Assembly: GCA_011109175.1 (NCBI GenBank)
Contig: RDEW01000008.1
Span: forward strand, 511,698-575,697
Direction of reading: 5' to 3'
Source: Dicyema japonicum
Lineage: Eukaryota > Animalia > Dicyemida
DNA: 64,000 nt
The notes beneath the pieces were generated by a model. The model was not told the origin of the DNA. It was given only the letters and a program-made list of their open reading frames with translations, and ran no database searches. Positions 3,446 through 46,275 of the stretch are shown here, piece by piece. The position numbers were made by a program, and so were the translations under genes. Each line of letters begins with the position of its first letter. Within the stretch, counting starts at the first letter, position 1.

Positions 3446-4618
3446 TGATCAATTGAGGTATATTAAAATTCACCAAACTATCAAAACGGAAAATAAGTTA
3501 AGTTTTGAGTGAATATGCCACGTGTTCCTATAACAATTTTACTAAATTACCATTAGCATCAGATTTGGCATAAATCACAAGACTTTACCGACAAACCAAT
3601 GCATTGTGGAATACGTCTTAGCCTCGTCAAGATGCGAAAAAATCGACACATTATATTAAAAGAACCTATGCATACTGTGCTCCCAAACAGGAATACCCGT
3701 CGAACCCTAACTTACGGACCTTCGACTCGCAACTAGTTTTCTCCTTGTCCGCTTCGTCATAGTGTATCTGTGAGGAAGAAAATCGATCAGCTCAGAAATT
3801 CTTAGAAATTCAGGGTGATGCTAAGGGGACATTATGTGAAACACAGTAATTAAACACTTAACTAACTTGTCAATATTTAGCTAACTGGCAGAGCTACTTT
3901 CGATCTTCCAGTAAGTTTCCCCATTTCACTTTTATGGAAGGAGTTCAACCTTTATGCATTATCTTTTGTGTTCACCCAAACCTCAGTGCTATATACAATA
4001 TGGCTTCACAATGGGTTCAACAGTGATGCTTTTGGATTTTAATTCATTGTTGCATAATTAACATTTTCTTCAAATAGTCTTCCTTGTCTCATAAGGAAGA
4101 TTTGAGTTTTTTATCGCGTCTCTACTTTTCTTTGAGTGTGTTGCCCATTTTTACTTTCTGTTAACCTCATTTAGTCTATTAATTCTAAATAATTTTCTAA
4201 TATAAGTTTTACTTCAGGGTCGGCATAAACCCGGGAGCGATCGGAGCATAGACATTGATGATAGAGATGACATAATTAGTTTCGTTCGGAACTTGAGTTG
4301 TATGACTGCAATACGATGTGGGAAAGCAAATACAAGCGTCATAAGGTCATAAAAATATTTGACAGCAAAAACTGACCCCATGGATTGATGAATCACGTCC
4401 AAGTATATGATTTTGGTAATGAACTTCAAACCTCGAGTGTTGAAAGTACCGAGGGAGAAGACATATTTTTATTTATTTAATAGAAGACATATTTTCAAAG
4501 TTATCATCACCGTAAGATAAATGTATTATTAAAAATAATTAATTTTAATAAAATAAATAAATTTAATAATTTTTTGAATTCATTTAAACGTAAAGGCGCC
4601 TACTAGGTTATTCTTTAA

Positions 4619-5588
4619 ATGTGTGACGGTCCTCAAGATTTACAAAAGTATTATAAAATTCAATTGTAGGGAAATTGCTTTCAACTCATTTTCAATTGGA
4701 AGACCTCTTGGTACTGGTCGATTTGGCCACGTGTATCTAGCAAAGGAAAAGAAGTATAATTTCATCTGCGCACTCAAAGTTAGCTTTAATTCACGATTCC
4801 AGATCATCTTCAAATCACAAATCATTACCAATGACCTCGTCCTCCAATTCCGCAGAGAAATCGAAAATCAGCTTCACCTTAAGTGAGTTCCTTTCTAACC
4901 CAAGACACCCCAACATTCTCCGTCTCTACCAGTTTTTTGACGACAGCGACAAAATTTTCATGGTTCTTGAATATGCCATCCACGGTGAACTGTACACCAT
5001 CCTGCTAAAAAAGAAGAGACTCAGTCACCACGAAAGCACTAGGATAATATGCCAGGTTATTTCTGCTCTGCGGTACTGTCATGCAAGGGGGGTAATTCAT
5101 CGAGACTTAAAACCGGAAAATATTTTGATGGGAAACAACTACAGCGTGAAGATAGCCGACTTTGGCTGGTCTGTGCACTCCCCCCAGACCGTGTATGAAG
5201 GATTCATTACTTTATAGGAGGAGTACTCGCTGTGGTACCCCTGATTACATGGCTCCGGAGATTGTGATTGGCCAACCGTATGACAAAATGGTCGATGTCT
5301 GGAGTGTGGGAGTTCTCACATATGAGGTGCTGTCAGGATCGGCTCCCTTCTCTGGTAAGGACAACCGGGAGACCTTTCATAATATTTCTTGTGTCAAATT
5401 TGGTTATTCTGACTATTATTTTACCTCTAATTCTAAGGACTTTATATCAAAGGTAGGGATTGTGGGGAATTTAGATATTGATGAACCCTCCAAGGTCTAG
5501 GATGAACTTCGATGCGATGTTTGAACATCCTTGGCTGGTTAATAATGGTGGGGATTACATTCAGGCGGCTATTGCTAACTCATCGTGA
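4619..5588 (+). CDS. AURK: Aurora-family Ser/Thr kinase, 6 exons, 284 aa
   Basis: GT-AG introns 4648-4669, 4779-4802, 4883-4904, 5193-5217, 5453-5474 (22,24,22,25,22 nt). Spliced CDS is 855 nt with no stop and contains IGRPLGTGRFGHVYLAKE, RREIENQLHLKHPNILRLY, IHRDLKPENIL, IADFGWSVH, CGTPDYMAPE and EHPW, which are Aurora signature motifs. Confidence 0.93.
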
Positions 5589-6369
5589 TTAATTTAAATT
5601 ATGTTTGTTACTTATTTTTGTGTTAGGGATATGGTTTTTAATTTTGAATTATTCTTGGTTGAGTTCATGCGGTCGGGGTACTCCTTTACTAATAATATCT
5701 ACTGAGTATTCCAGGTTAGTAGTAGTTCGCTTATTGGTGAGAAGGATGAGTTGATGATTTTGTTAGTCTACATCTGTGTCTGATGTAACCTTCTTACTTC
5801 TTCACATAGACGATATGGTAGAGTTGAGCACTCTTCCTTCTATTGATCATCAGTGTTTAGGTTTGAGTTTTTGATTATTTTAATGATATTGGTATTTTAA
5901 TATTTCATTGGTAAGCTAACGCTTATTCGCTAATTAGTTGAAGATTAAGTTAGTGAGGGAGTTCTCTTCAACCCCTATGGGGATCCCACCAATTCTGTTT
6001 TGCACTTCTTCAGAGTGTCCTTTAAATCAATGTAGTCTCTTACAATATAGCTTGATATAGTAAAACATTGAGAATTTGCTATTTTTGAGACAGTAAAAAA
6101 AGGAGTAGAATATATTTTTAAATCTGTTAATAACCCTTTAATTTCAGCTATTTATTATTTCAAAATTTTGTAAAAACGATCTTTATGATATCAAATAATT
6201 TTAAGGTCCACGAGGGATCAGTCCCTGCCTTGAAGAGGTCGAAAATAAATGATTTAAAATGAAGCGTAAATAACATTTTGGGGATATTAGCTCATGACTG
6301 GTCAACGAATTAGAGGAGTACGAAAATCCACTTTTAAAAAATGAATTTGTTAAAATAAGGAAACAATCT

Positions 6370-6689: not shown

Positions 6690-9490
6690 AAACAAGGTTA
6701 GATGTCAGCCTTTTCCATGCTCCCCTGTTCCTAACATAGTATTCTAACATAGTATGTTTCCATAGATATGTTCGGTGGGGATGTTAATTCCATCCTCAGC
6801 ACGTGTCCGAAGAACTCCATTGGGATTCCAGTACTTCTAAGCTGATATGTCTAGTGCTGCATCTTATATATAAAGCATTTCTCGATATTCTCGTTGGCCA
6901 AGTAGTTCCTGTTATTTTTCTCAGCTGACCTCTGTGGAACGAGTCTAGTTTTTCCATATCCGCTGATGAGGTTGCCCAAGTTCCAGCGTTATATAAAAGT
7001 ACGGGTTTTATGACTGAGTCGTATAATAGGATTCTCATTTTCGTGTCGATACCTCTTTGATTGAGCCATAGATTCTTCAGTTTATATAGCGCAGCATTGG
7101 CTAGAGTTTTCCTAAGTAAAATATCTTCGCTATCTCCCATAAGTGAACCGAGTTTTTTTACTTGTCGCCACTTCTCTTCTAGGACGTTACTCATCATTCT
7201 TATCTCTGTGAGTTCTGTTTTCTCTCTGTTCACAGTAAGAAACCATTTCCCTAGTACATCTGGTGCTTTTTCTAATAGGTTTTCCAGGACCTCTTTGTCT
7301 TCAGAAATTAGGTCTACATCGTCCGCGTAGATCACTTCTTCCGTCTTTCATTGATATACGGTCTAAGTTCCCTCATAGGGGCTTCCAAATAAATTGTGAA
7401 TAGTAAAGGAGAAAGGGAGTCTCCTTGTGGAGAAGCCGTGTTTGTTTCAAATTTTCTTGAATAGGTCTTTCCGACTCTCACAAAGAGCTCAGTGTTAAAA
7501 AGTAGAATTTAGTTTCGACTCATCAAGAAATCCGCTAGTACCCCATTAATTCGTTTTTGTTAACCGCATCAAAAACTCTTGATAGGTCAATTCCCAGAAT
7601 ATTGGTGGCGTTACGGTATCTTTGATATGCTGCACACCTCCATCTGTGACTCCAGACCGAATCAGATGTGGATCTCCCTTCTCGAAAACCACTTTTACTA
7701 TCAGGTAGGTATTTGTAAGCAGATCCTTTTATTTGTTCAAGCACAATGTTTGCCAAGACTTTGCGTATTGAATTTAGTAGTATGATGGGTCGCAAATTTT
7801 CGAGCGGTCCTATGGTTTTGTTGATTTTTTGTACAAGGATTAGTAGTTCCGTACCCAGAGGTAAAGTTGAGTTAGTTGAAAACATTTCATTTAGTAGTGT
7901 AGCGATTTTTCCAAAAAGAGCGTCAGGGCCGTATTTCAGTAATTCTGGGTTTATCGCATCTGGTCCGGGGCTTCTGTTATTCTTGAGTTTTCGGCAGGCC
8001 GTTTTGATTTTCTCGGCCGTGATTGGTATCTCCAGGAGTCTTGGCCTTCCATCAAATAAGTAGATTTCTATGGATTTGATGTTGAGAAGCTTCTCAAAGT
8101 GAGCCGCGATGGCTTCAGTTTGTTCTTCGGTGTTCAGTATCAGCTTACCGTTATCGTCTTTTATGGTTAGTCGACTTCGGTTTGTTTGCCGCAGCAAACG
8201 GGCAGCGACGTACACCTGTGCGTTGCCTCTCACTTTGTTTACCTCTAGCTATTTTTTCTAGGAAAAGCATCTTGTTCAGAGCTTTTATTTTTCTTCTGAC
8301 ACGTTGCCTTTTGCCCTGAAGGGCTTTTATCGTATTAGCGTCAGTGACATTTGATTTTCTCATGTTTATTTCTTTTAAACTTTTCGCAAGCTCAAGAACA
8401 TCTGGATGAATAGCCTTCAGGTGCATTTTACTATTCTCCCTTTTGCCAAGACATGCCTCAGCAGCTTCGTTGATGGTGTCCTTTGTGCGTTTCCTGGCGT
8501 CTTCTAACGAGGCATCCACCAATACGTCCTACATACGAGTTTGAATGTATTGTTGATATCTCTCAGTAGTCTCCGGTTGGGAGATCAGCCTTTCAGTCGC
8601 GTAGTCGCCTCTGACTTTCTCAAATTGTGATTTTTGGCATTCTTGTATTTGATGGCATGTTTTTTCAGGATGAAGGTCGTAATATCCATCTTGTGGTCAC
8701 TGCCAGTCGTCGAGCCTTCATATGAACGTTCGTTTATTAGAAGGTGTTTGTCTTTAGCCAGACATATGACATATTGGGACCAGCTTTCCTCTAAGTTCCT
8801 TCGCTTCCCCATCCACGTAGTTTTGTGGCAGGCAGGATGCGTAAATGCAGTATTAAATAGGAAAAGGTTGTTTGCCACACAAAAGTGACCAAGTATTGTC
8901 CCGGGTAGGTTTCTTATTCCACGTCCATGTTCTCCAAGAAAACATCATCCCGGTTATTCTTCATCCCGATTTTCGCATTCAAATCCCAGCAATGATTATT
9001 AGTGATGACGACTCATATTCGTTGAACGTCCGTAACAGTGTTGAATAGAAGTCGTCTAGTTCTGTCGGATCTTTCGCTACTCTCCCGCAGTGTGGCGCAT
9101 AAACATTTATAATTGTCAGAAAGCTCTTCGAAGGAGGTAAGTCGTTTAGACGGATTTGTATAACACAGATCATTCACACTCCATATACGGTAAACTGCAC
9201 TTGGCGAATCCAAGTCCATAATATTTTGAGTCGCTCGGTAGACATATATTCGATATTCGCCATAGTTCTCATCAAGGCTACAAGTAACTTTCGTCTCTTG
9301 TAGGCACCCAATAGATACGTCGTATCTCTCCAGGTCGTCACAGAGAATCTTCCTAGACCAGGTCGTAGATAAGCCTCTAGCATTGAACGTAAGGAGCTTT
9401 AGACAAGAAGTATTCCTTTGTAACCCTTGTTTTTTAGACATTTTTCTCAACTGCGATCCAATTAATAACCTGTTACTTTCTATTTTCATT
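6690..9490 (-). mobile_element. Near full-length RTE-like LINE (AP endonuclease + RT), frameshifted
   Basis: Ordered ORF pieces: LLTFNARGL...GCLQETK, IINVYAPH, SDHKM (endonuclease); KNNRSPGPDAI, LRPIILLN, GFREGRST, DLSRVFD, IYADDVDL (RT). Confidence 0.9.
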
Positions 9491-13004: not shown

Positions 13005-15240
13005 TAATTAGGTGATCCCGGCCGCCTCCATAAGGTCTTTCATCTTTTCCGGTGGACCTTCCGAGATCCAACACAGCTTCTTCTGAGGACGGGAGGGTTT
13101 TTGAAAGAAATACAAAGGGAGTGATGCAACGTCTTCTAGTAAGACCCAATCCATTAGAGCATTGTAGGAAGTTGGATTTTCGGCACAGAGCGGCGAATCC
13201 CTTCCCATTTTGTCCGATAAGGTCTTCCAGAGAGGTGGGTGTGAGACTGACTGTTCTCACGAGCTTGCCGATAGTTGTAGCTGATAGGGACTGAATATCA
13301 CTGATTTTCTGTTTGTTCGTCCAGGATAGGTTGATTCCCCAAGACGCACAGGCGTAGCTGATAGATGGCTCAATGAATTGTTTATGTAGTAGTTTCAATG
13401 CTGGGAAAGGGGTTTCTGATGCCACCAAAAATAGATTTGATCAAACCAAGATTTCTTGAGCAGGTTCCGGAGATATATTCGACATGAGGGAAAATAAATC
13501 AACGGTCATTCTTCCAAGGCGTTTGTCTGAGGTAAATAGGGATGTGGATGACTTCTCAGGAGATATTATATCAAGTCTGTTGGAGATTAACCAATTTTGA
13601 ATCACGTGTAGTTGTTTTTGAACTCTTTCTGAGGCTTTTAGGAGATCCTGGTCACGGGATCCAATTAGAATGTCGTCAGCATAGGAAAGGAGAAGATCGT
13701 CTTCATCAACTGATCGTGGCAAATCGGACATAAAAAGGTTGAATAAGGCGGGGGACAAAATAGAGCTTTGCGGAACACCATTGGGAAGTAGTCTCGAAAG
13801 TGATTTGTCCCATCCATTACAAACTCGGGCCTTTCTCCCGCTGAGGAAATTCAAAAGCCAGAGTTTTAGATTGGGGTTAATGAAGAGTCCAAATAATTTC
13901 CTGGTTAAAATTTTCCTGGAGACAGAGTCAAAGGCGTTACGCAGATCCACAGAGCAGACGATGGTTTTGAAGTGACGAGGATTTGAGTTGAAGCCATCAA
14001 GGATAAATTGATTGAGAGAAGTAAGGTGGGTGGACGTTGAATAGAACTTTCTGAAGCCATGTTGAAAGGAACTGAAGGAAGGGACGGGGAAATGAGATCA
14101 AGTACCAGTTTTTCCAATAATTTTGAAATGAACATAATAGAGAAATTGGTTGGTATGAAGCGGGATTGTTTTTGTCCTTGCCAGGTTTTGGTATTGGGCG
14201 TATGTGGGAAAGTTTCCAAATCGTAGGGATTGAATTCATGTTCAAAGAAATAGTTGAAAATAAGGGAGATTACCCCAATAGTAACCGGTCCAAGGTGTTT
14301 AAGAAGTATTGAAGAGATGCCATCTGGACCACAAGCGGGAGGGATTAATCATCTTCAAGCCTTCGAATACGTTTGAATGAGAAATAAAAGTGATCGGCGG
14401 TCTCATCGAGAACAAAGAGGGTCCATCCATTTTCTTGAAGGTTTTGTGACTTATACCGGTATAATACTTCGTTAGTTGATTTAAGCTGTGTTGGTCTGTC
14501 TTTTGTGTCGAGGTGGAGTTTTCTTTAGGGCCAAGTCTTTTTATTGCCTTCCAGACCATCTTGGCAGATTTCTGAAATGGGAGAGAGCAGATTCGCTTTT
14601 CCCACTTGTTCGCTTCAGCCCTTCTGATCCTTCTTGAAATTTCATTCATAAGGAAATTTATCTTCCCTTGGTGGGTGCTCACATTACTGATCTGCCAAAT
14701 CGAACTCTTATCTTCTTATTGAGTAAAAGGACTTTTATCATTTTCATTTACTCAGAATCCAGAAATTCCTTTACTGAGTAGATCTCGACTGATTATATCG
14801 AAAGCCTTCAAGATGTCTTATGCCAAGATTATAGTTGCTTTTTAGTATCTTTGGTTTATAAAGAGGCTCCATTTGTGACTCCAAACTAAAATCCGTCTTT
14901 TTATAAGTAGTTCTTTTCATTCCCTAAGAATCTGGGACATCTAAATACTCTCAGAAACCGCATACGTAACCCAGTGGTTAACCTATTAGCGATTAAATTG
15001 AGCGAAAACTTTAAGGCCTTCCAGCCAAGTCGTTAATGAGGTACCTTTTATCGCACAGAATCTCAATCAGCCATTCCTCTTCTCTGCAGCCCCTTTTTGC
15101 TATCAGCGATCAACTGACAGGAAGGAAAATGATTTGGTTCATAAAATCCCTTGCTGATCTAATCTCACAGTCCTTGTCTTAGATTATTTGATGAAGACAG
15201 AATTCATGTCCTAGCAATCTCAAAAACTAAACGAGCAAGT
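13005..15240 (-). mobile_element. Jockey/I-like LINE, 5'-truncated and frameshifted (EN C-terminus, RT, C-terminal AAGIT)
   Basis: WKLSHIRPIPKPGKDKNNPASYQPISLL, DLRNAFDSVSRKIL, GVPQSSILSPALFNLFMSDLP, YADDILI, LHKQFIEPSISYACASW; ends MEAAGIT-stop. Confidence 0.85.
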
Positions 15241-15589: not shown

Positions 15590-17500
15590 AAGAAAATTGG
15601 TGGTATTCGCACCATTGCAATTGGAAACGTATTTCGACGTTTAGCCGCAAAAATGGCTTGTCGTTTTGTTATCTCCCGAATTTCAGCCGAATTTTGTCCT
15701 TCGCAGCTTGGTGTCGGAATCAATGGCGGCTGTGAAGCTGGGATCCACGCAGTGAGAGAATTTGCGTCACAATCAACTGAATTGAATGCTGAGGACAGAG
15801 TTTTATTCAAATTGGACCTCCGGAATGCCTTCAATTCAGTCAGAAGGGACACCGTTCTTGATACCTGTAGGAGGAGGATTCCTCAGATTTATCCCTTTGT
15901 ATATCTCGCGTATTCGGATCCATCCTCTCTTGTTTTTGGCAGTGGAATTATTTCGTCCGGATCCGGAGTTCAACAGGGGGACCCACTCGGTCCTCTTCTA
16001 TTTTCCTTATCTATCGACCATATTGCCCAGGGCCGTTGCACTCCACTAAATCTGGACGATTGTATTCTCGGTGGAAGTCCAGATGATATTCTCTCCAAAG
16101 TTGCATCGATCAGACGTTTGTGTAAAAATCGGTCTGGAATTTAACAATGAAAAGTGCGAAACAATTAATCTGAATTCGAGTTCCGATTCATTCTACCTTT
16201 TTCATAGAAAACTCTGCGATATCATCCCAAGGGTTAGGAGACTCATATTGATTCTCTCGACTTCCTTGGGAGTGGGATTTTGGTAAACCGGGTGAGGGAG
16301 TTATTGGAAGGCAAAAGGACTAATTTACGTCAGTATGCCTACAGGATGAGTTTTTTGAACCGTCATGTCGCCTTTTTTATGCTGAAGAATTGTCTCCTTC
16401 TCCCAAGACTCCTTTTTATTCTACGGGGATCCCCATGCTACGCCGAAAAAGATCTTCTATCGTTAATTGATATGGATATCCGGTCAACGATGGGGTCCAT
16501 TCTTAATGTTTGTTTTGATGATTTCGGATGGTTACAGGCCTCACTCCCTGTAGCCTACGGTGGTTTGGGTCTTTCTCTTCCTTCGGACGTTGCTTTGGGC
16601 GCCTATTTATCTTCGTTCGGCTCGTCAAGGCGTTTAGTGGATACGGTCCTTCACTCTACTTCCGGACTAAACGTACCGCTGACGCCGTCGGGATCCTGGG
16701 ATGAATGGATGAATTTGTACCTGAATGCTCCGGCCAATTGTGATAAGCAAAAGTCCTATTTGTTTTGTGTCTTCGAAAAGAAGAAAGAGTTTGAAAAGAC
16801 GAAAGATGTAAGAAGGCTTGCCTGCCTCAAAACAGCCAGTTGTCACTCGACGGGGGCCTGAATGAACGCTTATCCATCTGCGGAAATTGGAAACCTGTTG
16901 GATGATGAGGCTGTGAGAATAGCTACCTCGCTTCGTCTTGGTCTTAAATTATGTGCCGAAAGAAAATGCCGCTGTGGACGTTGGATCGATCCTTTTGGTT
17001 ATCATCCCTTGTCATGCAAGATGAGTGCGGGTCGTTTCCCCAGGCACTCCTGTCTTAACATGACATTAAAGAATTCCCTTGCCTCTGCTGGACACTATTG
17101 CCTGTTAGAACCTGCTGGTCTTTCCATCTACGATGGAAAACGCTTTGATGGGATGACGACTTTTCCATTCGCCAACGGACAAAACCTGATCTGGGACGCG
17201 ACGTGTGTTGATGCTTATTCCCCGTCTAATTTGGTTGCTTCTGCTTCAGACCCAGGACACGCTTCAAAGCAGGCCGAGGAACGAAAGAGGAGGAAGTACC
17301 AGAGAATTTCGGAGGAGTATCTTTTGTTCCATTCGCAGTGGAAACAGGAATCCTTGGCCCCAAGCAGATGAGTTGGTTCGTAAGATCGGCTCCATGATTC
17401 AAGCTGTGACCAAGGATCCGCGAGAGACTGGTTGGTTCCGAGAACGTATCTCGATGGCTATTGTTAGGGGAAATCGCATGGCCATTCAGATGCATTAATA
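15590..17500 (+). mobile_element. CRE-clade non-LTR retrotransposon (RT + Cys/His finger + restriction-like endonuclease), 5'-truncated
   Basis: IRTIAIGNVFRRLAAK, QLGVGINGGCEA, DLRNAFNSVRR, GVQQGDPLGPLLF, LDD; then CRCG..HPLSC..GRFPRH, RFDGMT, LIWDATCVD. Frameshifts and a stop at 16859-16861. Confidence 0.85.
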
Positions 17501-22170: not shown

Positions 22171-22496
22171 CAAGCCATACTTTTATATAATTTGAGGCTC
22201 ACAATATGAGACCTTATTCGATGATATATAGACACGTCTTAGGTTAGCAACAGGCTCTTTTTTAATTGCTGATTGAGTTTTAAAATTATTATAATCGGAG
22301 TTAATAATGAAATTTGATGACGCATGCTAACGACGCACATATTTAAAAGAACGAAATAGAAAGCCCTACGTGTACATTTGCTAGGAATAGGTTTTATTGG
22401 CCTCTTGTTTTTAATCAGAGTTAAATTTCTTAAATAAAAAATAAATATAATTGCTAAAATTAATAATTAGAGAATCGTGATGAAACCAATCAATTA

Positions 22497-24068
22497 ATGA
22501 CTCAGGTGGACTTAAATGACCTTATAATAGTCGTTTTCGGAGCATCGGTTGCCCATTTTGTGACTCTTAGGGAGACTTGGCTGCGAAAAAAATATATCCC
22601 GCTATATGGTATAAAATTTTTGTGATTCCAAGGACTCTCTATAAAAAGTCACAGATTCCAAAAAATGTTAAAATTGTTGGTTATGCTCGATCTCCTCTCA
22701 CTGCGAGCATATTGACGGAGAGACTGAGAGCGTCAGTTCTTCCTCAGGTCGATGAGGACTGTACTTTTGACGAATTCTGCAATAATAACTTCTACATTAA
22801 AGGACTCTATGACGAAGAGGACAGTTTTAAAATACTCAGGGAAAAGTTGGACGACATTGGTAAGAATTCCAACAGAATATACTACATGGCACTCCCTCCA
22901 GATCTCTATGAAAGCAGTTCTTTGTTGATTAACCAATTCCTCATGCTAACTACGTGACTATATTAAAACCATTTTTGTAGTGGATGGGTCCGAATAATAT
23001 ATGAGAAACCCTTCGGTCGAGACTTGACTTCCAGTAATGATCTCTCTGCTTATTTGACGTCTCTTTTTGACGAGTCCCACCTTTACAGAATGGACCACTA
23101 CCTGGGGAAGGAAATTCTTAGAAATTTGATAGCTCTGAGGTATTTTCTGATAAAACTGGTAGATTCGCTAACCGAATTTTCTCAGCGGTTTGGAATAGAG
23201 ACCACATAAAAAGTGTGATCGTGACGTTCAAAGAAGACTTTGGAGTCAAAGGTAGGTCCGGCTATTTTGACAATTATGGGATTATTCGGTAACTTTGGTC
23301 TTCTATTTGAAAGGGACGTCATACAGAACCATTTACTGCAGATCGTGACTCTGATTGCCATCGAAATGCCAAAGACCGCTGATTCTGAGGCCATTCGGGA
23401 GGAGAAGGCTGATTTCTGTTAATTATTGCAGGTGAAGGTTCTAAAACACATCAAAAAAGCCGAGATTTCTCAAACTGTGATAGCACAGTACTTGGGATAT
23501 CGAAGTGAGGCCGGAGTTGCCTCAAATTCGAGGACTCCAACCTTTGCTTCCACTGTTCTATACATCGACAACGACCGGTGGAGGGATGTCCCATTTGTTA
23601 TTAAGGCTGGGAAAGGTAGGGAATCGGGGTGACTGTAGAGTTTAACGAAAGGAAATGTGAGATTAAAATTCGTTTTCGTGATACAGAGAGTGACTTATTG
23701 GGGTCCACTACAAACAACGAGCTCATATGTGTGTGGGACCAACTGAGTCCATCTGCTTGAGAGTTCTGACAAAGAACCCCGGGAGGACGAGAGATACGTA
23801 GACGTGGATTTGAAAATGGACTATAAAAGCGCATTTGAAGTGATCTTTTTAAATAGGCATGTAGAACTATTCGGTGGTTGATCCCTATGAGACTTTAATT
23901 CTCCAGGCGATCGAAGGAAATCAGGCCAATTTTGTGAGGACGGATGAGCTCGAAGAGGCATGGAGGATATTCACACCTCTGCTTGATGCCTTGGAGAAGG
24001 AGAAAACAGAGCCTGTTGTATACGAGCGAGGAGGTTCTGGTCCTTCTTGCACTGACAAACCGGTTTGA
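22497..24068 (+). CDS. G6PD: Glucose-6-phosphate 1-dehydrogenase, 9 exons, ~459 aa after correcting two -1 indels
   Basis: Spliced motifs [83 protein letters not shown]. Introns 22548-22570, 22609-22632, 22954-22980, 23140-23162, 23289-23313, 23408-23431 (GC-AG), 23616-23638, 23840-23864. Single missing bases near 23725-23736 and 23781-23783. Confidence 0.95.
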
Positions 24069-24699
24069 TGTGCTACAAAATAAACTAAATTAATACTATT
24101 CCCGTTTAATAGAGTCTGTTTCTATTCTGATGTTTATTGATATTTTAAAAGTGCACCATTGTGACCACATTTGTTTATAAAGAATATATACCTTTGTTAA
24201 CACGCTGGGGTGATCCTAGTTATTTCAATCTTCCTCTGTTCTACGTCGAACTCCTCAGAGTGCCAAGGTCTTCGCCGTCCTTAGTAATTTCTTCGCCAGA
24301 TCGTCGTTAAGTATTTTGGGAAAATTATGGGGTTTACTCTTTCTTCTTCAATTATTATTAACCCCAGGCTTGCAATTGTTGGTAAGCACAAACAGTCACA
24401 TCTAATTAATCCAAGGAAGGAACACAAGGGAAAACATCTGCTTGTGTCTATCAAATGCATCTCCGTTACAGGCTTTCAATTCAGAAGAAAGTTGGATAAG
24501 TATATCCTCTCTTCCATTTTCGTCGCACATTCTACCGTCGCGGAAATCACTCCTTTCTTCGGCGAATAGTTTTCATAATGTAATCTTCAAGAGGATTTGG
24601 TCTGAGAGAAGGTAATAGGAGTGATTCATTGTATTTCTGTTGTTTTTTAACTTAAATGTATTATTTGAGGTTAGTTTTGGGATATTATATTTATAATGA

Positions 24700-29640: not shown

Positions 29641-30479
29641 CTTCATCTCCAATAATTTATATGTTCTACCGATACGTTCAATCACTTTTGCGAAAGAATA
29701 TATTAAGCTAATTGGTCTGTAGCTTGCCGGATCTTTTTTTTACTTCCCTGGTTTTGGAATCATCCTCACAACAGCATTCCTCCATATTAAAGGGAGGTGG
29801 CCAAGTCGTAAACACTCATCATAACGACATAGCAGATAGTCAAATAAAATATCCAGACCCTTTTTGACAAGTTTCACTGATATGTGCTTTCACTGATATG
29901 TGGTTATGTCAATGACGCTGACAGTAGTATCAACAATAGGCAGTTCCTCGTCGGAGTGTTTAAATATATCTCTTTGCTATCAGTGATCAAACTCTATCGA
30001 TCCACATCTTGAATTTTTTGGAGATGATCTCTGAATATCGAAGGTGTTACCTCCGTTATGATACTCTTTCGTCTAGTTTATTTTATTCAATATAATTTTT
30101 TCTGCTACCCGACTTTGGACAGATTATCTTCTGATAGCAGTTCCAAAAAGAGGGATTCTTCATATCTATTTTCGCAGCCCCAACCTTCCATAAAAGGTCA
30201 GTCACCTCCTTCTATATATGCTGATTGCTTTCTTCATCATCCTGATTCTGGCTGATATGAATTCCCCGTCTATTTTGTCGACACAACGCCTTTGTTTTGC
30301 CCTCATAATAATTAGCGACACGAAATAATGATTATTTTTTTGAGAAAACCCTTCGTGTATATAGGTGAAGATATGACTGCATGAAATACGTTAGTTCTCG
30401 ACTTGCAGTATTGATATCTTCTATGGTTGAAAACTCTCTCGGTAGAACATATAAATTATTGGATATGAAGACACTATAG

Positions 30480-30990
30480 TCGGCCCAATCCAAATAAAAT
30501 ATGTTGAAGCTCAAGAAGACATTTCATAACATCTGGCCTCATACTAATAACTAATTCTTGTGGAATATGGTCGCTCCCGATATCCCATAGAGTTTTTGGC
30601 TTTCCCACATACACAGATAGAGCTGGCGATACTAGGAATACGCCGACTTTGTCGCCACCATGATAAGAAAAATGATTTAAGTCATCCGACGTAAAGATCA
30701 CAAAGCCACATGAATTAGACAATAATTCTAAACGTCGTCCATTCTGATTTGTCTTGCTACAACCATAACTAGTGTTCTTAGAATTAAGATCGCCAATTAA
30801 GATAGTATAGGGATTTTTGTTGTAGAACTCAGNCAATAATTCTAAACGTCGTCCATTATGATTTGTCTTGCTACAACCATAACTAGTGTTCTTCAAATTA
30901 AGATCGCCAATTAAGATAGTATAGGTATTCTTGTTATAGAACTCAGTTTAATCTGTATAACAAGTCTCAAGGTTCTTTTCGAATAGACCT
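30480..30990 (-). mobile_element. LINE AP-endonuclease fragment (inverted twin of 29250-29640)
   Basis: ORF 30474-30896: ILIGDLNSKNTSYG...IGSDHIP; duplication around the N at 30833. Confidence 0.65.
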
Positions 30991-37690: not shown

Positions 37691-38205
37691 TATAATTTAT
37701 TATTTTAATAACATTATCTATAAACAATTTTAACGAGGATGGAATATTTATAAAAACAAGATCAAACCGGTGTAAAATACAATGCAAACTTGAAAACTGT
37801 GGAGATACTGGGTATATACGGTATACTGCTTAGCAAACTTTTCGATCATTGCTTGAGCACCATCATTGCAAACACCAATACATTTTTTCCAACATAATTC
37901 CCGAGAAATCATATAATCATTGAATGCGTTGAAATTTTCTTGACCAGTTGTGTTTTTTGAAAAAATTTACAAATTTAGTAATCTTCTTGCAATGTATAAT
38001 TTAACAAATAATAAACAAAAACTAATATTTTTGATAATCCTTCAACATCATTTGATTCGTAACTGAATAGATAAATAATCAGATTTTTTTTAAAACAAGG
38101 TTTTATTAAAGATTACTCTAAAGTGTGAGCTTCTTTATTTTTTGCAATAAGGCAAATTATCTCAGATAAATTAAAAATTATTATCAACTACATGGAAAAT
38201 TCAGT
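37690..38205 (-). mobile_element. hAT (Buster/ZBED5-like) transposase fragment
   Basis: HCILHRFDLVFINIPSSL..FIDNVIKIINYI, the CxxH motif of the hAT core; matches 50600-51120. Confidence 0.7.
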
Positions 38206-38454
38206 GTAATATGAAAAATTATATTTTATAAACTTTTTAGTTAAATGGATGAAGTATATAACCTCACAATTCTACATCCTAAACATACAAATAATATTGT
38301 AAAAACATTAATTTTCATAAATTATTTAATACACTAATAATCATAGAATAATGAATGTCTGTTGTGCTTTATATCAATTATTTCTTGTTTTGCCATAACT
38401 ATTTCTTTGTCAATATTATATATCAAATTATCAGTAAAATTTTAGATTTCTTTT

Positions 38455-38853
38455 TTAGAATAATGAATGCCTGATGTGCTTTATATCAATTATTTCTTGT
38501 TTTGCCATAACTATTTCTTTGTCAATATTATATATCAAATTATCAGTAAAATTGTAGATTTCTTTTTTATAATTTTCTAGCAGTTCCAAAGTCTTGAAAT
38601 ATAATAAAAATAAAACATTAATTCCATTAGGAACCCATATAGTCTTGACTCCACAGAGAAGATCATTGAAATATGACAACCAATTTACTCGTCGTATTAT
38701 TTCAGGTTTTGTTTAAAACATTATAATTACAGTAGTTTTATGTATGGAAGCGACTTTGTTTAGTGTGTCTTCTGGTTGAACCATATATTCACATAACGGT
38801 ACATCCATAACGGATGATTCTAAAAAGCTACCATAACTAACACTATTTGTCAT
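38455..38853 (-). CDS. Small LysM-domain protein (LysMD-like, 116 aa); needs a GT-AA intron, so possibly a pseudogene
   Basis: Removing 38707-38730 (24 nt, GT...AA, in-frame TAA) gives EYMVQPEDTLNKVASIHKTTPEIIRRVNWLSYFNDLLCGVKTIWVP, which aligns to the LysM pattern HxVxxGDTLxxIAxxYxxTxExIxRxNxL...IP. A second probable GT-AG intron lies at 38593-38616 (24 nt, in frame). Confidence 0.7.
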
Positions 38854-40739
38854 CAAATTAGATAATATTAAATAAATAATTTTAATTTATATTTAAATAT
38901 TTTAATAGGTTTCACAGCAACGATAGGTAATTTAATAATAACATTATGACGAGGGATCAACACCGAGCAAAAATGAGAGCTTGAACCAATTCGTCAGGAT
39001 CACTTAGTTTAATTTTTCGGTATAACAATGATCATTGGAATTTAATTTAACTTTATTTAGTGACGTAGTTAATACTCGTTTATAAGATTCTTTTGAAAAC
39101 TATCAGTTACTCCTTATAGTTAAATTAATTGTTTGAAAAGTTTCCCTCCGATAGCGTCATTGGATTTACCTTACTGAGAAGACGTCCAATNTGGTCATTG
39201 GAATTTAATTTAACTTTATTTAGTGACGTAGTTAATACTCGTTTATAAGATTCTTTTGAAAACTATCAGTTACTCCTTATAGTTAAATTAATTGTTTGAA
39301 AAGTTTCCCTCCGATAGCGTCATTGGATCCACCTTACTGAGAAGACTTCTAATGCCTGGCCGTCATCAAAAGGATACACTATTCTTTCACCGGGGACAAT
39401 GTCGTTTCTTGGAGATAAGTTCTGGAACGCTGCAACGAGCATGAATCAATGAGTTAATTTGGTTAACCTTGATCTTTGAAATTTTTAAATTTTTTACTCA
39501 CTTTTTTCATTTTATTAATACAATAATATGTTTTCTTTACTTAATTTTCTAAATACTTATTTTATCTCAAATTTCTAACTTTATTGGTGTTTACTTATGT
39601 CATAGTCTACACAAAGTAACTGACATGTAGTTAGTGTATTATTATTAACACGAGAAATGTTAACAATTAACACTAATTAAGTGTATCCAGTTCCCACTAT
39701 CACGAAAAAAGAGTTTCCAATGTCAGGCAAGTCCATCGAGAAACTGCATTAAAACTAGAAGACATCTATTCTTTGCAGTTGTGGGAATCTCTTAATGGAG
39801 TGAAAGAGAGCAAAGTATCCTTTGTGTTACCCTGGCACTGTGAAATCTTTAATCAAATAGTCACATGCCACCCCTTTCTGTTTTGACATTTAGCCTCAGC
39901 CTTTTCCTCAATAAGTATCATGTATTTCGTTTTTTGCCTTAATTTGCATGCTCTCTAAAGTTTTCAGCTGCACAAATGTCTGTATATACGTCTTCACTTA
40001 CTAATCCGGTTCAGGGACATTTATAAAAAAGTTAATATCTTCTAGATTATCAAAAAACAAGCAGATGCAGTCGTCTTTCAGTTCTGGTGAGTTATTTGCA
40101 TACATTAACCACCCGCTAGATTTAATAATATTTCTCAATTTTCTTGAGTAAATAATCATGTTGAATATTCATTATCTATCCATTTAGATTTTCAATGTTA
40201 TACTTTCGAGAAATGAATTCTATGATAAGTGTTAAATTAATGCAGAATTTCCAATATTTTGTCATTAATTGGCAAAAATAAAGTTTGTTAATAATTTATT
40301 AAATATTTAAAATTAAAGGTGGCCGCTCTCATTTACCTTCAATTTGTATGGAAATGCGAGACAACTCCTGCTCCGTTTACCACTTTACTTGCTCACAAAA
40401 AATAGTAGACATAAACAAAATTTGTGTATGTGAAAAATATCCTAGTAAATATTAATAAATTTACCAAAATTGTAAAACACTTTGCGATTATTCAAAATAA
40501 AACTAAATATAATGTGCATTTATTTTTATTAAAATTGATAATTTTTTAGTAGCATACACGAATAACGAAACCTCTTTGATTTTGTAAGTATAGTACCATC
40601 ATTTTATAAACTTCCTTATTGTCTTAAATTAAATTTAATTATAGGAAGACAAAACTATAGTAATTAACAAGTTAGAAAATTTTTCGCATTTCGATAGTTA
40701 TATACTTTAATTATCGTTAGTTTGACTAAATGGATATAG

Positions 40740-42053
40740 TAAGTGTGAATTTAAATTTTAGTTGACAGAATTAATAGAGTGACCAGACCGTTATATAAAT
40801 GTCATCTACAAAAAGGACTTGAAGGATGCTATAAACCATCTTACTGGTTGCGTGATGATGAACAACAACAATCACTGTTAAGAAATTTTCAAAAAATCAT
40901 GTAGAAGTAACTATTATTTTTAAAATTGGTGTCATTCTCTGTTCAAATAAATGTGATAAAGATAAAAAATATATGACGATTCGACCTGCAACTACAATTC
41001 TTAAATTTTCCCTTCAAACCAAAAAGAAATCCCCAGTCTGTATAAATCTGATTATTAATTTAGGTGGAATGCAAACACTTTATTACCAAAAATGTAACGG
41101 AAACGATAGTTACCCAGTCACACATTTTTGGCAATTGAAAGGTTGTTTTATTAAATTTGAATTAGATGGTGGAATTAATTTTAGAGCTAAGGGTACTCAT
41201 GATCTCCTAAGACCTTCTGATTATAAACCACCAGCATTTGCTGTAGAAAAATTACTTGAATTTCGTTCACGTAATCCAGATGTTACATCCGAAGAAATTT
41301 CAAAAAAAATTGTGATCATTTTACTAATTTAAGGGAGAACAAATTCACGTGGCATTTAAGGCTCCAGCAGTAGTCAGTCGAATACTTAAGGAAAATGAAA
41401 TTATTTTTTCAAATTATTGAGGTAAAATCGCACTCATGAAGAAATCATATTCGTTTCATAAAAAACATAGTCAAATTGCTATACAAGAATCCAGGGACAA
41501 TCACAACCATCATTTAAACCAAAATCGATACCACCAAGATAGACATTCGAATCCAAGTCAAGTAAGCTTAAGACAAGTAGTAAGTCAGCCAATTCAGCCG
41601 TTGGTTTTTCCGTCGGATCAAAATAATATATTATGTGGACCAATGCAGTATAGAGACACACGGCTATTCCAAGAAACAAATTTTATGCAATCTGGATATG
41701 TAAATAGTATGGTACATTATTCACAACAATTTTGTGTATATAATGAAAACAGTACAAGGTCACAATTCATTCAATCGTATCCTAGAAATGATAGTTACGA
41801 TATGATGCCTCATAATTCAAGAATGGAATATTTACTAAATTATTCAAATCAATATAATAATCATCAAAATTATAATTTCATGCCTATAAATATAAACCCA
41901 GTAAATGGAATTATGAACCAAGAAATGACGAGTAATAGAAACTATCCATATATCACTCAATATATGTATAATTTTCACAATGAAGACCCTGATCATCAAA
42001 CATCAAATACTAATCCATTTATAAGAAATAACTCCATAACACCAGAATATTAA
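40740..42053 (+). pseudogene. gcm-like: GCM-domain transcription factor gene with a paired-RED/HTH-like segment and an N/Q/Y-rich tail; disrupted
   Basis: E*PDRYINVIYKKDLKDAINHLTGCVMMNNNNHC*EIFKKSC/IGVILCSNKC..IRPA..KKSPVC..CNGNDSYPVTHFWQLKDGGINFRAKGTHDLLRP follows the GCM motif order. GT-AG introns 41040-41063, 41142-41165, 41312-41333; stops at 40780, 40879 and 41418; non-canonical intron ~40904-40925. Confidence 0.8.
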
Positions 42054-42620
42054 TTAAAAACTAAGCATTTTTATATTTTCATTTTTTTCTTTTAGAAATT
42101 CAAACTTTTTAGTCTTTTAATTTTGAATGTTAAAGTCTAAAACAGTAAGAAAATTACTATTTTCAAAAATATAGATTTTTACAAATATGCTAAAACTTTG
42201 GATGTTTGGTTACCATTTTTCTTTAGAATAATTTTAATTTTTTAATTTTAACTCATCAATTAAAAAATGATCCTTCCTTTAAAAATGGCATTTTGTGGTA
42301 AAAAATTACCCTACCGAAACCTTTTAAGCAACATTTCAATTATCAGTAAAGTTTAATATCACCTCACAAACTTTCAATTCACTTCCCTCACTTCTTAATG
42401 AATAATTGAGTGAGTTGAATTTTCATTAACAAGATATGAAGTTGGAAAGTACAAGAATATTTAAGAGATCGACTTCCAAATTTTTGGAAATTGTTCTTTA
42501 ATCTTTAATTCTACAAAAACTGAGAAATATATGTATTTTGAAATTAATTTCATAATATGCATTATTTTTAAGGTCTATTAAATCAGTGTAACGAGTACCG
42601 GGAAAAGGCCTGATAACTCT

Positions 42621-43499
42621 NNNNNNNNNNNNNNNNNNNNNNNNNNNNNNNNNNNNNNNNNNNNNNNNNNNNNNNNNNNNNNNNNNNNNNNNNNNNNNNN
42701 NNNNNNNNNNNNNNNNNNNNNNNNNNNNNNNNNNNNNNNNNNNNNNNNNNNNNNNNNNNNNNNNNNNNNNNNNNNNNNNNNNNNNNNNNNNNNNNNNNNN
42801 NNNNNNNNNNNNNNNNNNNNNNNNNNNNNNNNNNNNNNNNNNNNNNNNNNNNNNNNNNNNNNNNNNNNNNNNNNNNNNNNNNNNNNNNNNNNNNNNNNNN
42901 NNNNNNNNNNNNNNNNNNNNNNNNNNNNNNNNNNNNNNNNNNNNNNNNNNNNNNNNNNNNNNNNNNNNNNNNNNNNNNNNNNNNNNNNNNNNNNNNNNNN
43001 NNNNNNNNNNNNNNNNNNNNNNNNNNNNNNNNNNNNNNNNNNNNNNNNNNNNNNNNNNNNNNNNNNNNNNNNNNNNNNNNNNNNNNNNNNNNNNNNNNNN
43101 NNNNNNNNNNNNNNNNNNNNNNNNNNNNNNNNNNNNNNNNNNNNNNNNNNNNNNNNNNNNNNNNNNNNNNNNNNNNNNNNNNNNNNNNNNNNNNNNNNNN
43201 NNNNNNNNNNNNNNNNNNNNNNNNNNNNNNNNNNNNNNNNNNNNNNNNNNNNNNNNNNNNNNNNNNNNNNNNNNNNNNNNNNNNNNNNNNNNNNNNNNNN
43301 NNNNNNNNNNNNNNNNNNNNNNNNNNNNNNNNNNNNNNNNNNNNNNNNNNNNNNNNNNNNNNNNNNNNNNNNNNNNNNNNNNNNNNNNNNNNNNNNNNNN
43401 NNNNNNNNNNNNNNNNNNNNNNNNNNNNNNNNNNNNNNNNNNNNNNNNNNNNNNNNNNNNNNNNNNNNNNNNNNNNNNNNNNNNNNNNNNNNNNNNNNN
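42621..43499. other. Assembly gap (879 N)
   Basis: Run of N. Confidence 1.
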
Positions 43500-43633
43500 T
43501 TCAGTGGAATATGAAAAATTATATTTTATAAACTTTTTAGTTAAATGGATGAAATATATAACCTCACAATTCTACTTTCTAAACATACAAATAATATTGT
43601 AAAAACATTAATTTTCATAAATTATTTAATACA

Positions 43634-44038
43634 CTAATAATCATAGAATAATGAATGCCTGATGTGCTTTATATCAATTATTTCTTGTTTTGCCATAACT
43701 ATTTCTTTGTCAATATTATATATCAAATTATCAGTAAAATTGTAGATTTCTTTTTTATCATTTTCTAGCAGTTCCAAAGTCTTGAAATATAATAAAAATA
43801 AAACATTAATTCCATTAGGAACCCATATAGTCTTGACTCCACAGAGAACATCATTGAAATATGACAACCAATTTACTTGTCGATTTATTTCAGGTTTTGT
43901 TTAAACATTATAATTACAGTAGTTTAATGTTTGGCAGCGAAATTGTTTAGTGTGTCTTCTGATTGAACATTATTCACATAACGGTACATCCATAACGGAT
44001 GACTCTAAAAAGCTACCATAACTAACACTATTTGTCAT
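43634..44038 (-). pseudogene. Second LysM-gene copy, frameshifted
   Basis: Close copy of 38455-38853, but GAA TAA and a 2 nt loss disrupt exon 1 and CAT TAA adds a stop; same AA-ended intron (23 nt). Confidence 0.72.
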
Positions 44039-44199
44039 CATTTAGATAATATTAAATAAATATTTTTAATTTATAATAACTGTTCTTTACTTAAATAAAA
44101 TTTGTGTTCTGCACGAACGAAACCCTAGTCATCTTGCGTGCTTATTGCAATGTGGTTGTGCTTAATTATTATTATATATCACCACCTTTCAACGAATAA

Positions 44200-45300
44200 T
44201 GATTTGGTTCCTTAAATGTCAAAACCTCGAAGCCAAGAGAGTCTGATAAATGTCTCAATCTTTGTCTATTATGATAGGTCTTACCACATCCAAAAGCAAC
44301 ATATTTAGATTAAGATCCCCAACAAAAAAAATTTCACATAGTCAATAAAAAATGGCCAATACTGTCCACACAATTAATAAAAGTCTTTTAATACATTCCC
44401 CCAATGGTAATCCACACATCGTCACAACAAACGTCAACAGTGGTAAATTCACAGTCAGTGTTCCGTTTGACTACATCCATCTTAGGAAAATGATAATAGA
44501 TCCGTCAATAGAGTTGAGTTTTTATATGAGAAACATCGATCTTTAAGAGAAGACAGAATTCCTAGGTATCCCATACTTCATGATTGGGAGTATATTGGAA
44601 AACTTTCAGTTGTCGTGATTAATTGATATGTTGTATATCAATGTTAAGCTACCGATTCAGTAGCGATTACTCCTATTCTCCTATTCGCTAGATGTGAAAA
44701 TCAACAATAGATTTTATCATCCATCGGTAGTCTTTGTAAATAATGTCTTCGAAAATAAGCAGAAGTTTATTTTCGAATAACATTATTGAAAGTTTTTGAA
44801 AAGTCAACTTCGACATTGTAAATTATTTTTCTGTAACTTTGGCATATATCCATAAGCCATCGATGATTCCAAAAGATATCAGCGGTTATCTCTACTTTTC
44901 TAAATCCTCTTTGACGATAAGTATGGATTAACAGCACTTGATATCCGAATCACCGTTCGGAATCCCTAGTCAGAGTTCAAATTATGGAAAGGAATTTTTA
45001 TTAGTGATAGCGCTCTTATTCACGTATTATAATGATAATTCCTACATATTAAGATATTTATGTACCTTCAACTGCGACCTGGTTATACAAATCCTTAGAA
45101 GATATAGCTTTGAACTTTAGATTTCCCTGAATATATTCAATACTCTCTTTAGAAGTCATTGGATTATGCGACTCGTCATTCGGTGATAAATTTTGTTCAG
45201 TTTTAATTTCTTAAATTGGAAAATTGGCTAAATCTTCTTGGATTGAGGAGAATATGTCCTTTGAACACCATAGACATGAAAGATTCGGATAAAGCTGACC
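44200..45300 (-). mobile_element. Old, heavily decayed LINE RT
   Basis: VDFSKTFNNV (cf. LDFSKAFD) and YGIPRNSV (cf. GVPQGSV); 44735-44850 shared with 35240-35370. Confidence 0.45.
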
Positions 45301-45639
45301 GTTCTATTCATTCATGCATTAATTTTATTTCTAAATTGAATAATATTGGAGTTTGTGATGTGCAGACCAAAGTTATCTGTAAATAATAATGTTAGTACAA
45401 AAAAACAGGTGATGCTACCAAAGAAGGTAATGAAGTCCTAGATATTGAGGATTCAGTCGGGGAGAGAAACACAATAGTGACAAACCTAAGATGTTGACTC
45501 CGGATATCCCTTTTTATCCTCTGGTTTCAAATCATATTAAAACGTTTTCCATAAAGTCACACACAGAATAGTATTTAATCAAATTTTAAGCTTTTGTAGA
45601 CATCGCCAGAAATGATTTCTCCTACTTTCAATATCTTCA

Positions 45640-46275
45640 CTATACAAGCCCTCCATCATCTACATTATACTTGGCAGAGAAAAAAGATATAATAGTTCAT
45701 AGGTTGGTTTTCGGTGTTTTCTCGCTCGTTATTATGTCGTGATTCCTAGTAAACACACTTGACCCAGCTATCAGGGTGTCGTGCTTTCGCATTAGGATAC
45801 GCTCACTTAGTTGGATTACTCCACAGAGTCCATGGCAGAAATTATCACGGGGTATATACAGTCTCTCCTTATTGGCTGCCAGTACATGTACATTGTACTT
45901 TTTAAGTGGTACACGGATCATAACATCCATCTCATCATGCTCTCTCGGATCAAACTCCACAACACCTATGTAGTAATTTAGCTGCGAGACAGCATATTCA
46001 TTTAATGCTAGGAACAAATCTCTTGCAGTAAGAGATTTCTTATAAAAGAACGCTGCTCTTTAACGGGTGCCTTCAGTAATTTGTCGTTTGTCTCAGGCAT
46101 TATAAGGAATTTGATGTTACGGTAACACCCAGATACTTATATCAATTGTGTACCTCTAAAACTCTTGATAACTCTCTACATACTTGCGTGTAAGTCGCAG
46201 ATTTTGAATAATTCAAATCTAGTTCTATACTCTCAAAAAATGCCTGATTCAGACCCCCATGGAGTCGAGCGCCTC
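45640..46275 (-). mobile_element. R2/R4-like RT/thumb fragment
   Basis: IELDLNYSKSAT...FLALNEYAVSQLNYYIGVVEF (ORF 45697-46017); homologous to 36600-37200. Confidence 0.75.

Follow-up and report, generated by a model that had tools for sequence, protein, structure and literature searches.

A GCM-domain gene with three in-frame stop codons in the dicyemid Dicyema japonicum: a possible young pseudogene

Introduction

GCM (glial cells missing) proteins are a family of animal transcription factors that regulate development. A published survey of domain content (Table S5, PMC6736024) lists one GCM gene in the orthonectid, two apiece in three flatworms and between one and three in most other animals, and it records none (0) with a GCM domain in the RNA-guided gene set of Dicyema japonicum. 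The locus described here raises the question of whether this dicyemid carries a GCM gene of its own all the same and, if so, whether that gene still works. It lies in a stretch of 64,000 nucleotides from contig RDEW01000008.1 of assembly GCA_011109175.1 (positions 511,698 to 575,697, forward strand), which we refer to as the window; coordinates are counted from its first letter. The original prediction, made from the sequence alone, was of an intact and chimeric factor: a GCM domain hidden behind introns of 22-24 nt, fused directly to a helix-turn-helix (HTH) of the paired-RED/Tc1 kind and continued by an in-frame tail of 205 codons. Each of these parts is considered below, together with the stop codons that interrupt them.

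Gene structure and domain identity

Three-frame translation and scripted splicing produced a model of six exons on the forward strand, spanning 40730-42053 and comprising 402 codons, with the following features.

Exon 1, 40730-40738, forward strand: ATG start codon, encoding MDI, with a GTAAGT donor directly after it
Intron 1, 40739-40761, forward strand: 23 nt, GT-AG
Exon 2, 40762-40906, forward strand: N-terminal third of the GCM domain, with TGA at 40780-40782 and TAA at 40879-40881 in frame
Intron 2, 40907-40928, forward strand: 22 nt, GTAAC...AATTG, with a TG end and no usable AG
Exon 3, 40929-41039, forward strand: middle of the GCM domain (VILCSNKC...KKKSPVC), from the Pfam and 1odh_A alignments
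Intron 3, 41040-41063, forward strand: 24 nt, GT-AG, in frame and free of stops
Exon 4, 41064-41141, forward strand: GCM domain, GMQTLYYQKCNGNDSYPVTHFWQLK, from the Pfam and 1odh_A alignments
Intron 4, 41142-41165, forward strand: 24 nt, GT-AG, in frame; a gap in the 1odh_A alignment
Exon 5, 41166-41311, forward strand: GCM domain to its end, DGGINFRAKGTHDLLRP, followed by DYKPPAFAVEKLLEFRSRNPDVTSEEISKKI, the first of the two halves of the claimed HTH
Intron 5, 41312-41333, forward strand: 22 nt, GT-AG, shifts the frame
Exon 6, 41334-42053, forward strand, its start: GEQIHVAFKAPAVVSRILKENEIIFSNY, the second half of the claimed HTH, with TGA at 41418-41420 in frame
Exon 6, remainder to 42053, forward strand: orphan tail of 210 codons rich in N, S, Q and Y, with TAA at 42051-42053 ending the gene

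The five introns (23, 22, 24, 24 and 22 nt) are AT-rich, with 18% GC; all five begin with GT and four of the five end in AG. Extreme intron shortening in D. japonicum is described in the literature, and introns of 22-24 nt are typical of the species. Because intron 3 is in frame and contains no stop, the raw open reading frame runs straight through it. Intron 2 is the one that lacks the AG, and its removal gives KKSC-RSVIL-C, that is, the C-x5-C spacing of the mouse sequence KKSCLGVVVC; alternative removals at the same site lose either this spacing or the KKSC strand.

Once the segments of 22-24 nt are removed, a GCM domain is coded at 40762-41220, and the earlier claim of such a domain concealed by mini-introns was borne out by profile and structure searches alike. 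The Pfam GCM profile (PF03615, gathering score 25) matched 40922-41329 with 52.4 bits over profile positions 48-131, although the query still carried the translations of two in-frame introns. A second piece, 40783-40878, scored 19.3 bits over profile positions 9-38, which alone is below the cut-off but is collinear with the first. For both pieces the top PDB match was 1odh_A, mouse GCM1, at residues 37-67 and 77-156 respectively, and the gaps that HMMER introduced against the mouse protein fall exactly on the two 24-nt introns (introns 3 and 4). On the strength of these alignments, the N-terminal 135 codons are a predicted DNA-binding domain of the GCM/WRKY-GCM1 fold, split by four mini-introns. 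The 136-residue GCM piece returned no match in a word search, as is expected because full-length GCM proteins fall outside the length range that the search covers.

No convincing inverted repeats, of the sort that would mark transposon termini, were found around the locus, no paralogue was found within the 64-kb window, and the exact products of the two long open reading frames had no entry when looked up in public assemblies. With its tiny introns, its single copy in the window and its lack of transposon termini, the locus is the dicyemid's own GCM-family gene, and the published D. japonicum annotation overlooks it. Elsewhere in the window, fragments of non-LTR retrotransposon reverse transcriptase/endonuclease reading frames occur on both strands (6796-8233, 13441-13950, 15653-16144 and 30474-30896).

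The domain is nonetheless degenerate at the residues on which GCM proteins depend for zinc. In the published ligand scheme, a core site is formed by a Cys dyad and an HxH motif, and a four-Cys zinc ribbon is inserted between the two cysteines (Babu et al. 2006, PMC1702500). The core site is not preserved as a whole: KKSC and QKC are kept, but the mouse 'EHDHPR' aligns with 'THDLLR', so that HxH has become HxL, the second histidine being leucine in the 1odh_A alignment. The four-Cys ribbon is likewise incomplete. The mouse protein has five cysteines in this stretch (C82, C86, C101, C113 and C116), and at least one ribbon ligand has been lost here, since two of these five are replaced, C101 by Thr and C113 by Ser. 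The DNA-contacting strand has also diverged, WAMRNTNNH of GCM proteins being CVMMNNNNH in this gene.

In-frame stop codons and coding signature

Three internal stops interrupt the 402-codon model: TGA at 40780-82 (codon 10), TAA at 40879-81 (codon 43) and TGA at 41418-20 (codon 192). Each is a single-base change from a sense codon. Translation under the standard code ends after nine codons, and the notion of an intact factor therefore fails for the locus as assembled; the GCM domain itself has no uninterrupted frame, as the stops at codons 10 and 43 both fall within it. The codon of the first TGA immediately precedes 'PD', which aligns to mouse GCM1 P37-D38 (the 1odh_A alignment starts at the next residue), and its position is what we take to be the conserved tryptophan of the GCM motif 'EWPD'; TGG to TGA would be one transition. 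The TAA lies between 'NNNNHC' and 'EIFKKSC'. Because this downstream 'EIFKKSC' still resembles what is presumably the family's own sequence, 'RILKKSC', the TAA appears to sit in DNA that was coding until recently. The second TGA separates the second piece of the claimed HTH from the open reading frame of 205 codons.

The frame that contains these stops is in other respects that of a protein-coding gene. Its three internal stops and the terminal one contrast with the other five frames of these exons, each of which contains 20-42 stops; stop codons locally have a frequency of 7.6%. For the whole model, GC at the first, second and third codon positions is 0.395/0.31/0.238, where local non-coding GC is 0.24-0.28, and for the segment after the GCM domain the values are 0.53/0.33/0.11; third positions match the composition of the flanking non-coding DNA. 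Together, stop counts and codon-position GC are the mark of a gene long constrained to code for protein in AT-rich surroundings, and they mean that its death, if it is dead, was recent. Any decay must indeed be very young, because 210 tail codons have remained without a stop and the contrast between GC1 and GC3 in the segment after the domain stands at 0.53 to 0.11.

The AT-rich setting is an island at approximately 38-46 kb (38000-46000) with about 28% GC (range 21-33%), the rest of the window having about 38-40%. Within the island, upstream of the gene, there are two tandem duplications, 38344-38567 (112 nt) and 39029-39353 (162/163 nt), each consisting of two copies with 97% identity, and a single N stands between the two copies of the latter. 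Downstream, an assembly gap of 879 N (42621-43499) begins about 570 nt beyond the gene's stop codon. The hexamer CACGTG occurs at 41346, inside exon 6, and nowhere else across 27-61 kb. Two host genes with mini-introns and the standard code lie on the forward strand of the window, a protein kinase (4600-5600) and glucose-6-phosphate dehydrogenase (G6PD; Pfam G6PD_N, 22300-24100), the visible exons of the latter containing no in-frame stop; their GC3, measured for G6PD and a kinase, is 0.41-0.56, in contrast to the island-like third positions of the gene described here.

A gene that looks so thoroughly coding could still be functional if its stops were not read as such. UGA might be decoded as tryptophan, through a suppressor tRNA, a near-cognate tRNA or A-to-I editing to UGG, and the TAA might be avoided by splicing a 31-nt GT-AG intron at 40877-40907; judging from the sequence, we regard this as unlikely. 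The TGA at 40780-82 does stand exactly at the presumed conserved tryptophan, but tryptophan codons are the likeliest mutational source of TGA, so the coincidence carries little weight. The strong coding signature and the lack of frameshifts are also as such a gene would have them, and with the 31-nt intron used the frame is open, only the two TGAs being left. The TAA, however, cannot be accounted for by tryptophan recoding, and the 31-nt segment, which is the sole GT-AG segment that removes it, would take with it the conserved 'EIFKKSC' strand and the first zinc cysteine. That a stop can be bypassed by some GT..AG is not in itself evidence, because a bypass of this kind that preserves the frame exists for about 39% of last-exon codons, and the one at the TAA is therefore not significant. 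TGG encodes tryptophan elsewhere in this gene and in the neighbouring G6PD, which reads open with ordinary TGG codons; no tRNA gene was found within the 64-kb window, we found no paper on nuclear UGA as tryptophan in Dicyema, and the RNA-guided published annotation contains no GCM gene. A contaminant from a ciliate or another organism with a variant code, an idea prompted by the TGA at tryptophan and the tiny introns, was rejected, since the flanking host genes use the standard code, this gene itself ends in TAA and GCM is an animal family.

Alternatively, the stops may be absent from a living gene, either as consensus or assembly errors or as a null allele fixed in an assembly of a pooled population. 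Pooled animals were indeed the source of the assembly, which drew on MiSeq and PacBio reads (Table S1, PMC6736024), and all the lesions are one base from sense codons. Three independent errors, each creating a stop within 640 bp, would be surprising after Illumina polishing, however, and the stops are not alone, as the ligands are degenerate and one intron is GT-TG, which points in the same direction. No GCM gene appears among the published models either, and we consider this explanation very unlikely.

The region downstream of the GCM domain

What follows the GCM domain is 57 codons, the claimed HTH, and then about 210 more, all of them lineage-specific and without detectable relatives. The physical arrangement was described correctly in the original prediction: DYKPPAFAVEKLLEFRSRNPDVTSEEISKKI follows the end of the GCM domain directly, in the same exon as 'KGTHDLLRP', and GEQIHVAFKAPAVVSRILKE follows after the 22-nt intron. 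The likeness to the RED subdomain of Pax6 survived in part. A gapless match of AVEKLLEFRSRNPDVTSEEISKKI to the Pax6 string is real but weak, with 5 of 24 residues identical and a BLOSUM62 score of 30 that was reached by 4 of 5000 shuffles, the comparator having been chosen after the fact; the second segment is not significant, its score being reached by 493 of 5000 shuffles.

Profile searches gave the claim no further help. Taken one by one at E values up to 10, the two HTH exons matched nothing in Pfam, including PAX (PF00292), PF01498 and PF13358, and exon by exon they had no match in NCBIfam and no relevant match in the PDB. For a more specific comparison, 120 metagenome loci were collected with a degenerate DNA pattern for PDLNPIExxW and their full-length open reading frames extracted; four of these were confirmed by Pfam as Tc1-type (HTH_Tnp_Tc3_2 + DDE_3), and one of the four (L016), used as a query, recovered 2163 relatives, of which 120 were taken and 57 sequences aligned (alignment A1). 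Viral contigs scanned for the Tc1 motif yielded 0 matches. Against the 57-sequence alignment, hhalign assigned the two HTH exons probabilities of 0.3% and 0.6%, and with hmmsearch --max the scores of the real exons on the Tc1 profile were equalled or exceeded by 362 and 177 of 1000 shuffles. Weak as they are, the best local matches of both exons do map to the HTH2 portion of the Tc1 profile, at columns 80-85 and 106. All these tests are low in power, because the intron cuts the 57-residue candidate into short pieces that were searched exon by exon. No PAX or HTH match was found in 41220-41400, the interval by which the fusion was to be judged, and so it fails by that measure, weak as an exon-by-exon search of an intron-split candidate is; a GCM domain fused to a paired-RED/Tc1 HTH is left without support from Pfam, NCBIfam, the PDB or the Tc1 profile, each blank exon by exon in what is, for such short pieces, a weak test.

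The tail proved no more informative. Its open reading frame of 205 codons (41436-42053) is real, as had been proposed, but it is in frame with the rest only through a stop, since the TGA at 41418-20 precedes it. An exhaustive phmmer search against 1.84 billion protein representatives found no relative of the tail, and nothing was found in a word search, the Atlas, the PDB, Pfam or NCBIfam; AF2, run without an alignment, gave a mean pLDDT of 33.8 and no confident fold. By eye, motifs like KKP, FSDE, DNxxH and DLNPIE occur in that order, which we take to be the order in Tc1 transposases. In 200,000 shuffles the arrangement of F-P-SDQ, ND-x5-H and NPV about 28 residues past the histidine never recurred (0/200,000), for a pattern that was written post hoc. 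With hhalign, the Tc1 alignment and the tail gave a probability of 0.2%, over a region that differed from the one picked by eye, and with hmmsearch --max the score of the real tail was equalled or exceeded by 514 of 1000 shuffles. An RNase-H-like DD34E domain with its D,D,E triad (PF13358) was thus not detected by any of Pfam, phmmer (both blank), hhalign (0.2%) or structure prediction (pLDDT 33.8). Because hhalign and hmmsearch, the latter judged against 1000 shuffles for each piece, gave no signal, a decayed Tc1 transposase in the tail is considered unlikely.

We therefore regard as quite unlikely a chimera in which a GCM domain has been joined to the HTH of a Tc1-type transposase, resembling a paired RED, with the tail perhaps representing its decayed DD34E domain. 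The Pax6 score, the chain of motifs in the tail (a post hoc pattern) and the weak local matches in HTH2 are what it has in its favour, and every objective test (Pfam, NCBIfam, PDB, phmmer, hhalign, hmmsearch and AF2) was negative. The first claimed 'helix', moreover, may be just the GCM domain continuing towards the C-terminus, as the PF03615 match stops 9 profile positions before the end of the profile. Most simply, the region after the domain would be the C-terminal part that GCM proteins usually have, which is not conserved, and not a second DNA-binding module. Highly improbable, in our judgement, is a working gene that would combine a zinc-poor GCM domain with a transposase-derived HTH and would need UGA to be read as tryptophan for its expression; if true, this would make it the first case in an animal of nuclear stop-codon recoding of such a kind.

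Discussion

How, then, should a dicyemid GCM gene with a convincing domain, a strong coding signature and three internal stops be understood? We think it somewhat probable that the locus is a recently disabled, single-copy GCM gene of dicyemid type, that is, a young unitary pseudogene or relic. The PF03615 match, the three stops, the replaced ligands, the intron without AG and the absence of a published GCM gene all support this reading. Against it stand the stop-free tail and the strongly coding GC1/GC3 contrast, by which any decay would be very young. It is also awkward that no frameshifting indel is needed if the GT-TG intron is spliced, which is odd for a gene that has accumulated three neutral nonsense mutations.

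Were the gene such a relic, its history might have been as follows. For a long time it would have been constrained as a protein-coding gene within the AT-rich island, its third codon positions settling at the background composition of that island. Selection would then have been relaxed, as might befit an animal of about 30 cells that has no nervous system, and function may have been lost in a lineage lacking the tissues that GCM usually specifies.

The absence of GCM from the D. japonicum gene set is in keeping with an extremely reduced body plan. What the locus adds is that GCM has not been deleted but persists as sequence that until recently was coding, so that either the loss is young or the annotation has missed a gene. 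In both cases it provides a concrete locus at which to ask how regulators decay in reduced parasites.

Closest to the gene among known systems are GCM factors such as Drosophila gcm/gcm2 and mammalian GCM1/GCM2 (PF03615; 1ODH). As in those proteins, the domain is N-terminal and its match is collinear (profile 9-131), the elements PD.Y...IY, NNNH, KKSC, YPVTHFW and KGTHD are kept, and a long non-conserved C-terminal region follows the domain. Unlike them, it has three in-frame stops and four mini-introns in the domain, one of which ends in TG, and it shows HxL for HxH, two replaced conserved cysteines and CVMMNN for WAMRNT.

The resemblance to the second HTH of Tc1/mariner transposases (PF01498, HTH_Tnp_Tc3_2) and to the paired RED (PF00292) is looser, consisting of 'NP..T..EI ... 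V.R.L' and of a segment about as long as a three-helix unit. No profile similarity was detected exon by exon (Pfam, our own Tc1 profile and the PDB), and, in contrast to Tc1/mariner elements and the paired domain, there is neither a first (PAI-like) HTH nor a recognisable catalytic domain.

A further parallel is offered by the unitary pseudogenes of developmental regulators in parasites with reduced body plans; dicyemids, for instance, have lost homeobox and neural genes (PMC6736024, PMC6543705). There, as here, a regulator is absent from the gene set, and this locus shares with such pseudogenes its nonsense mutations in sequence that still looks coding, in an animal without nerves or glia. 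It differs from the published dicyemid cases in what can be seen: published work reports only that GCM is absent from the gene models, whereas here the relic itself is visible.
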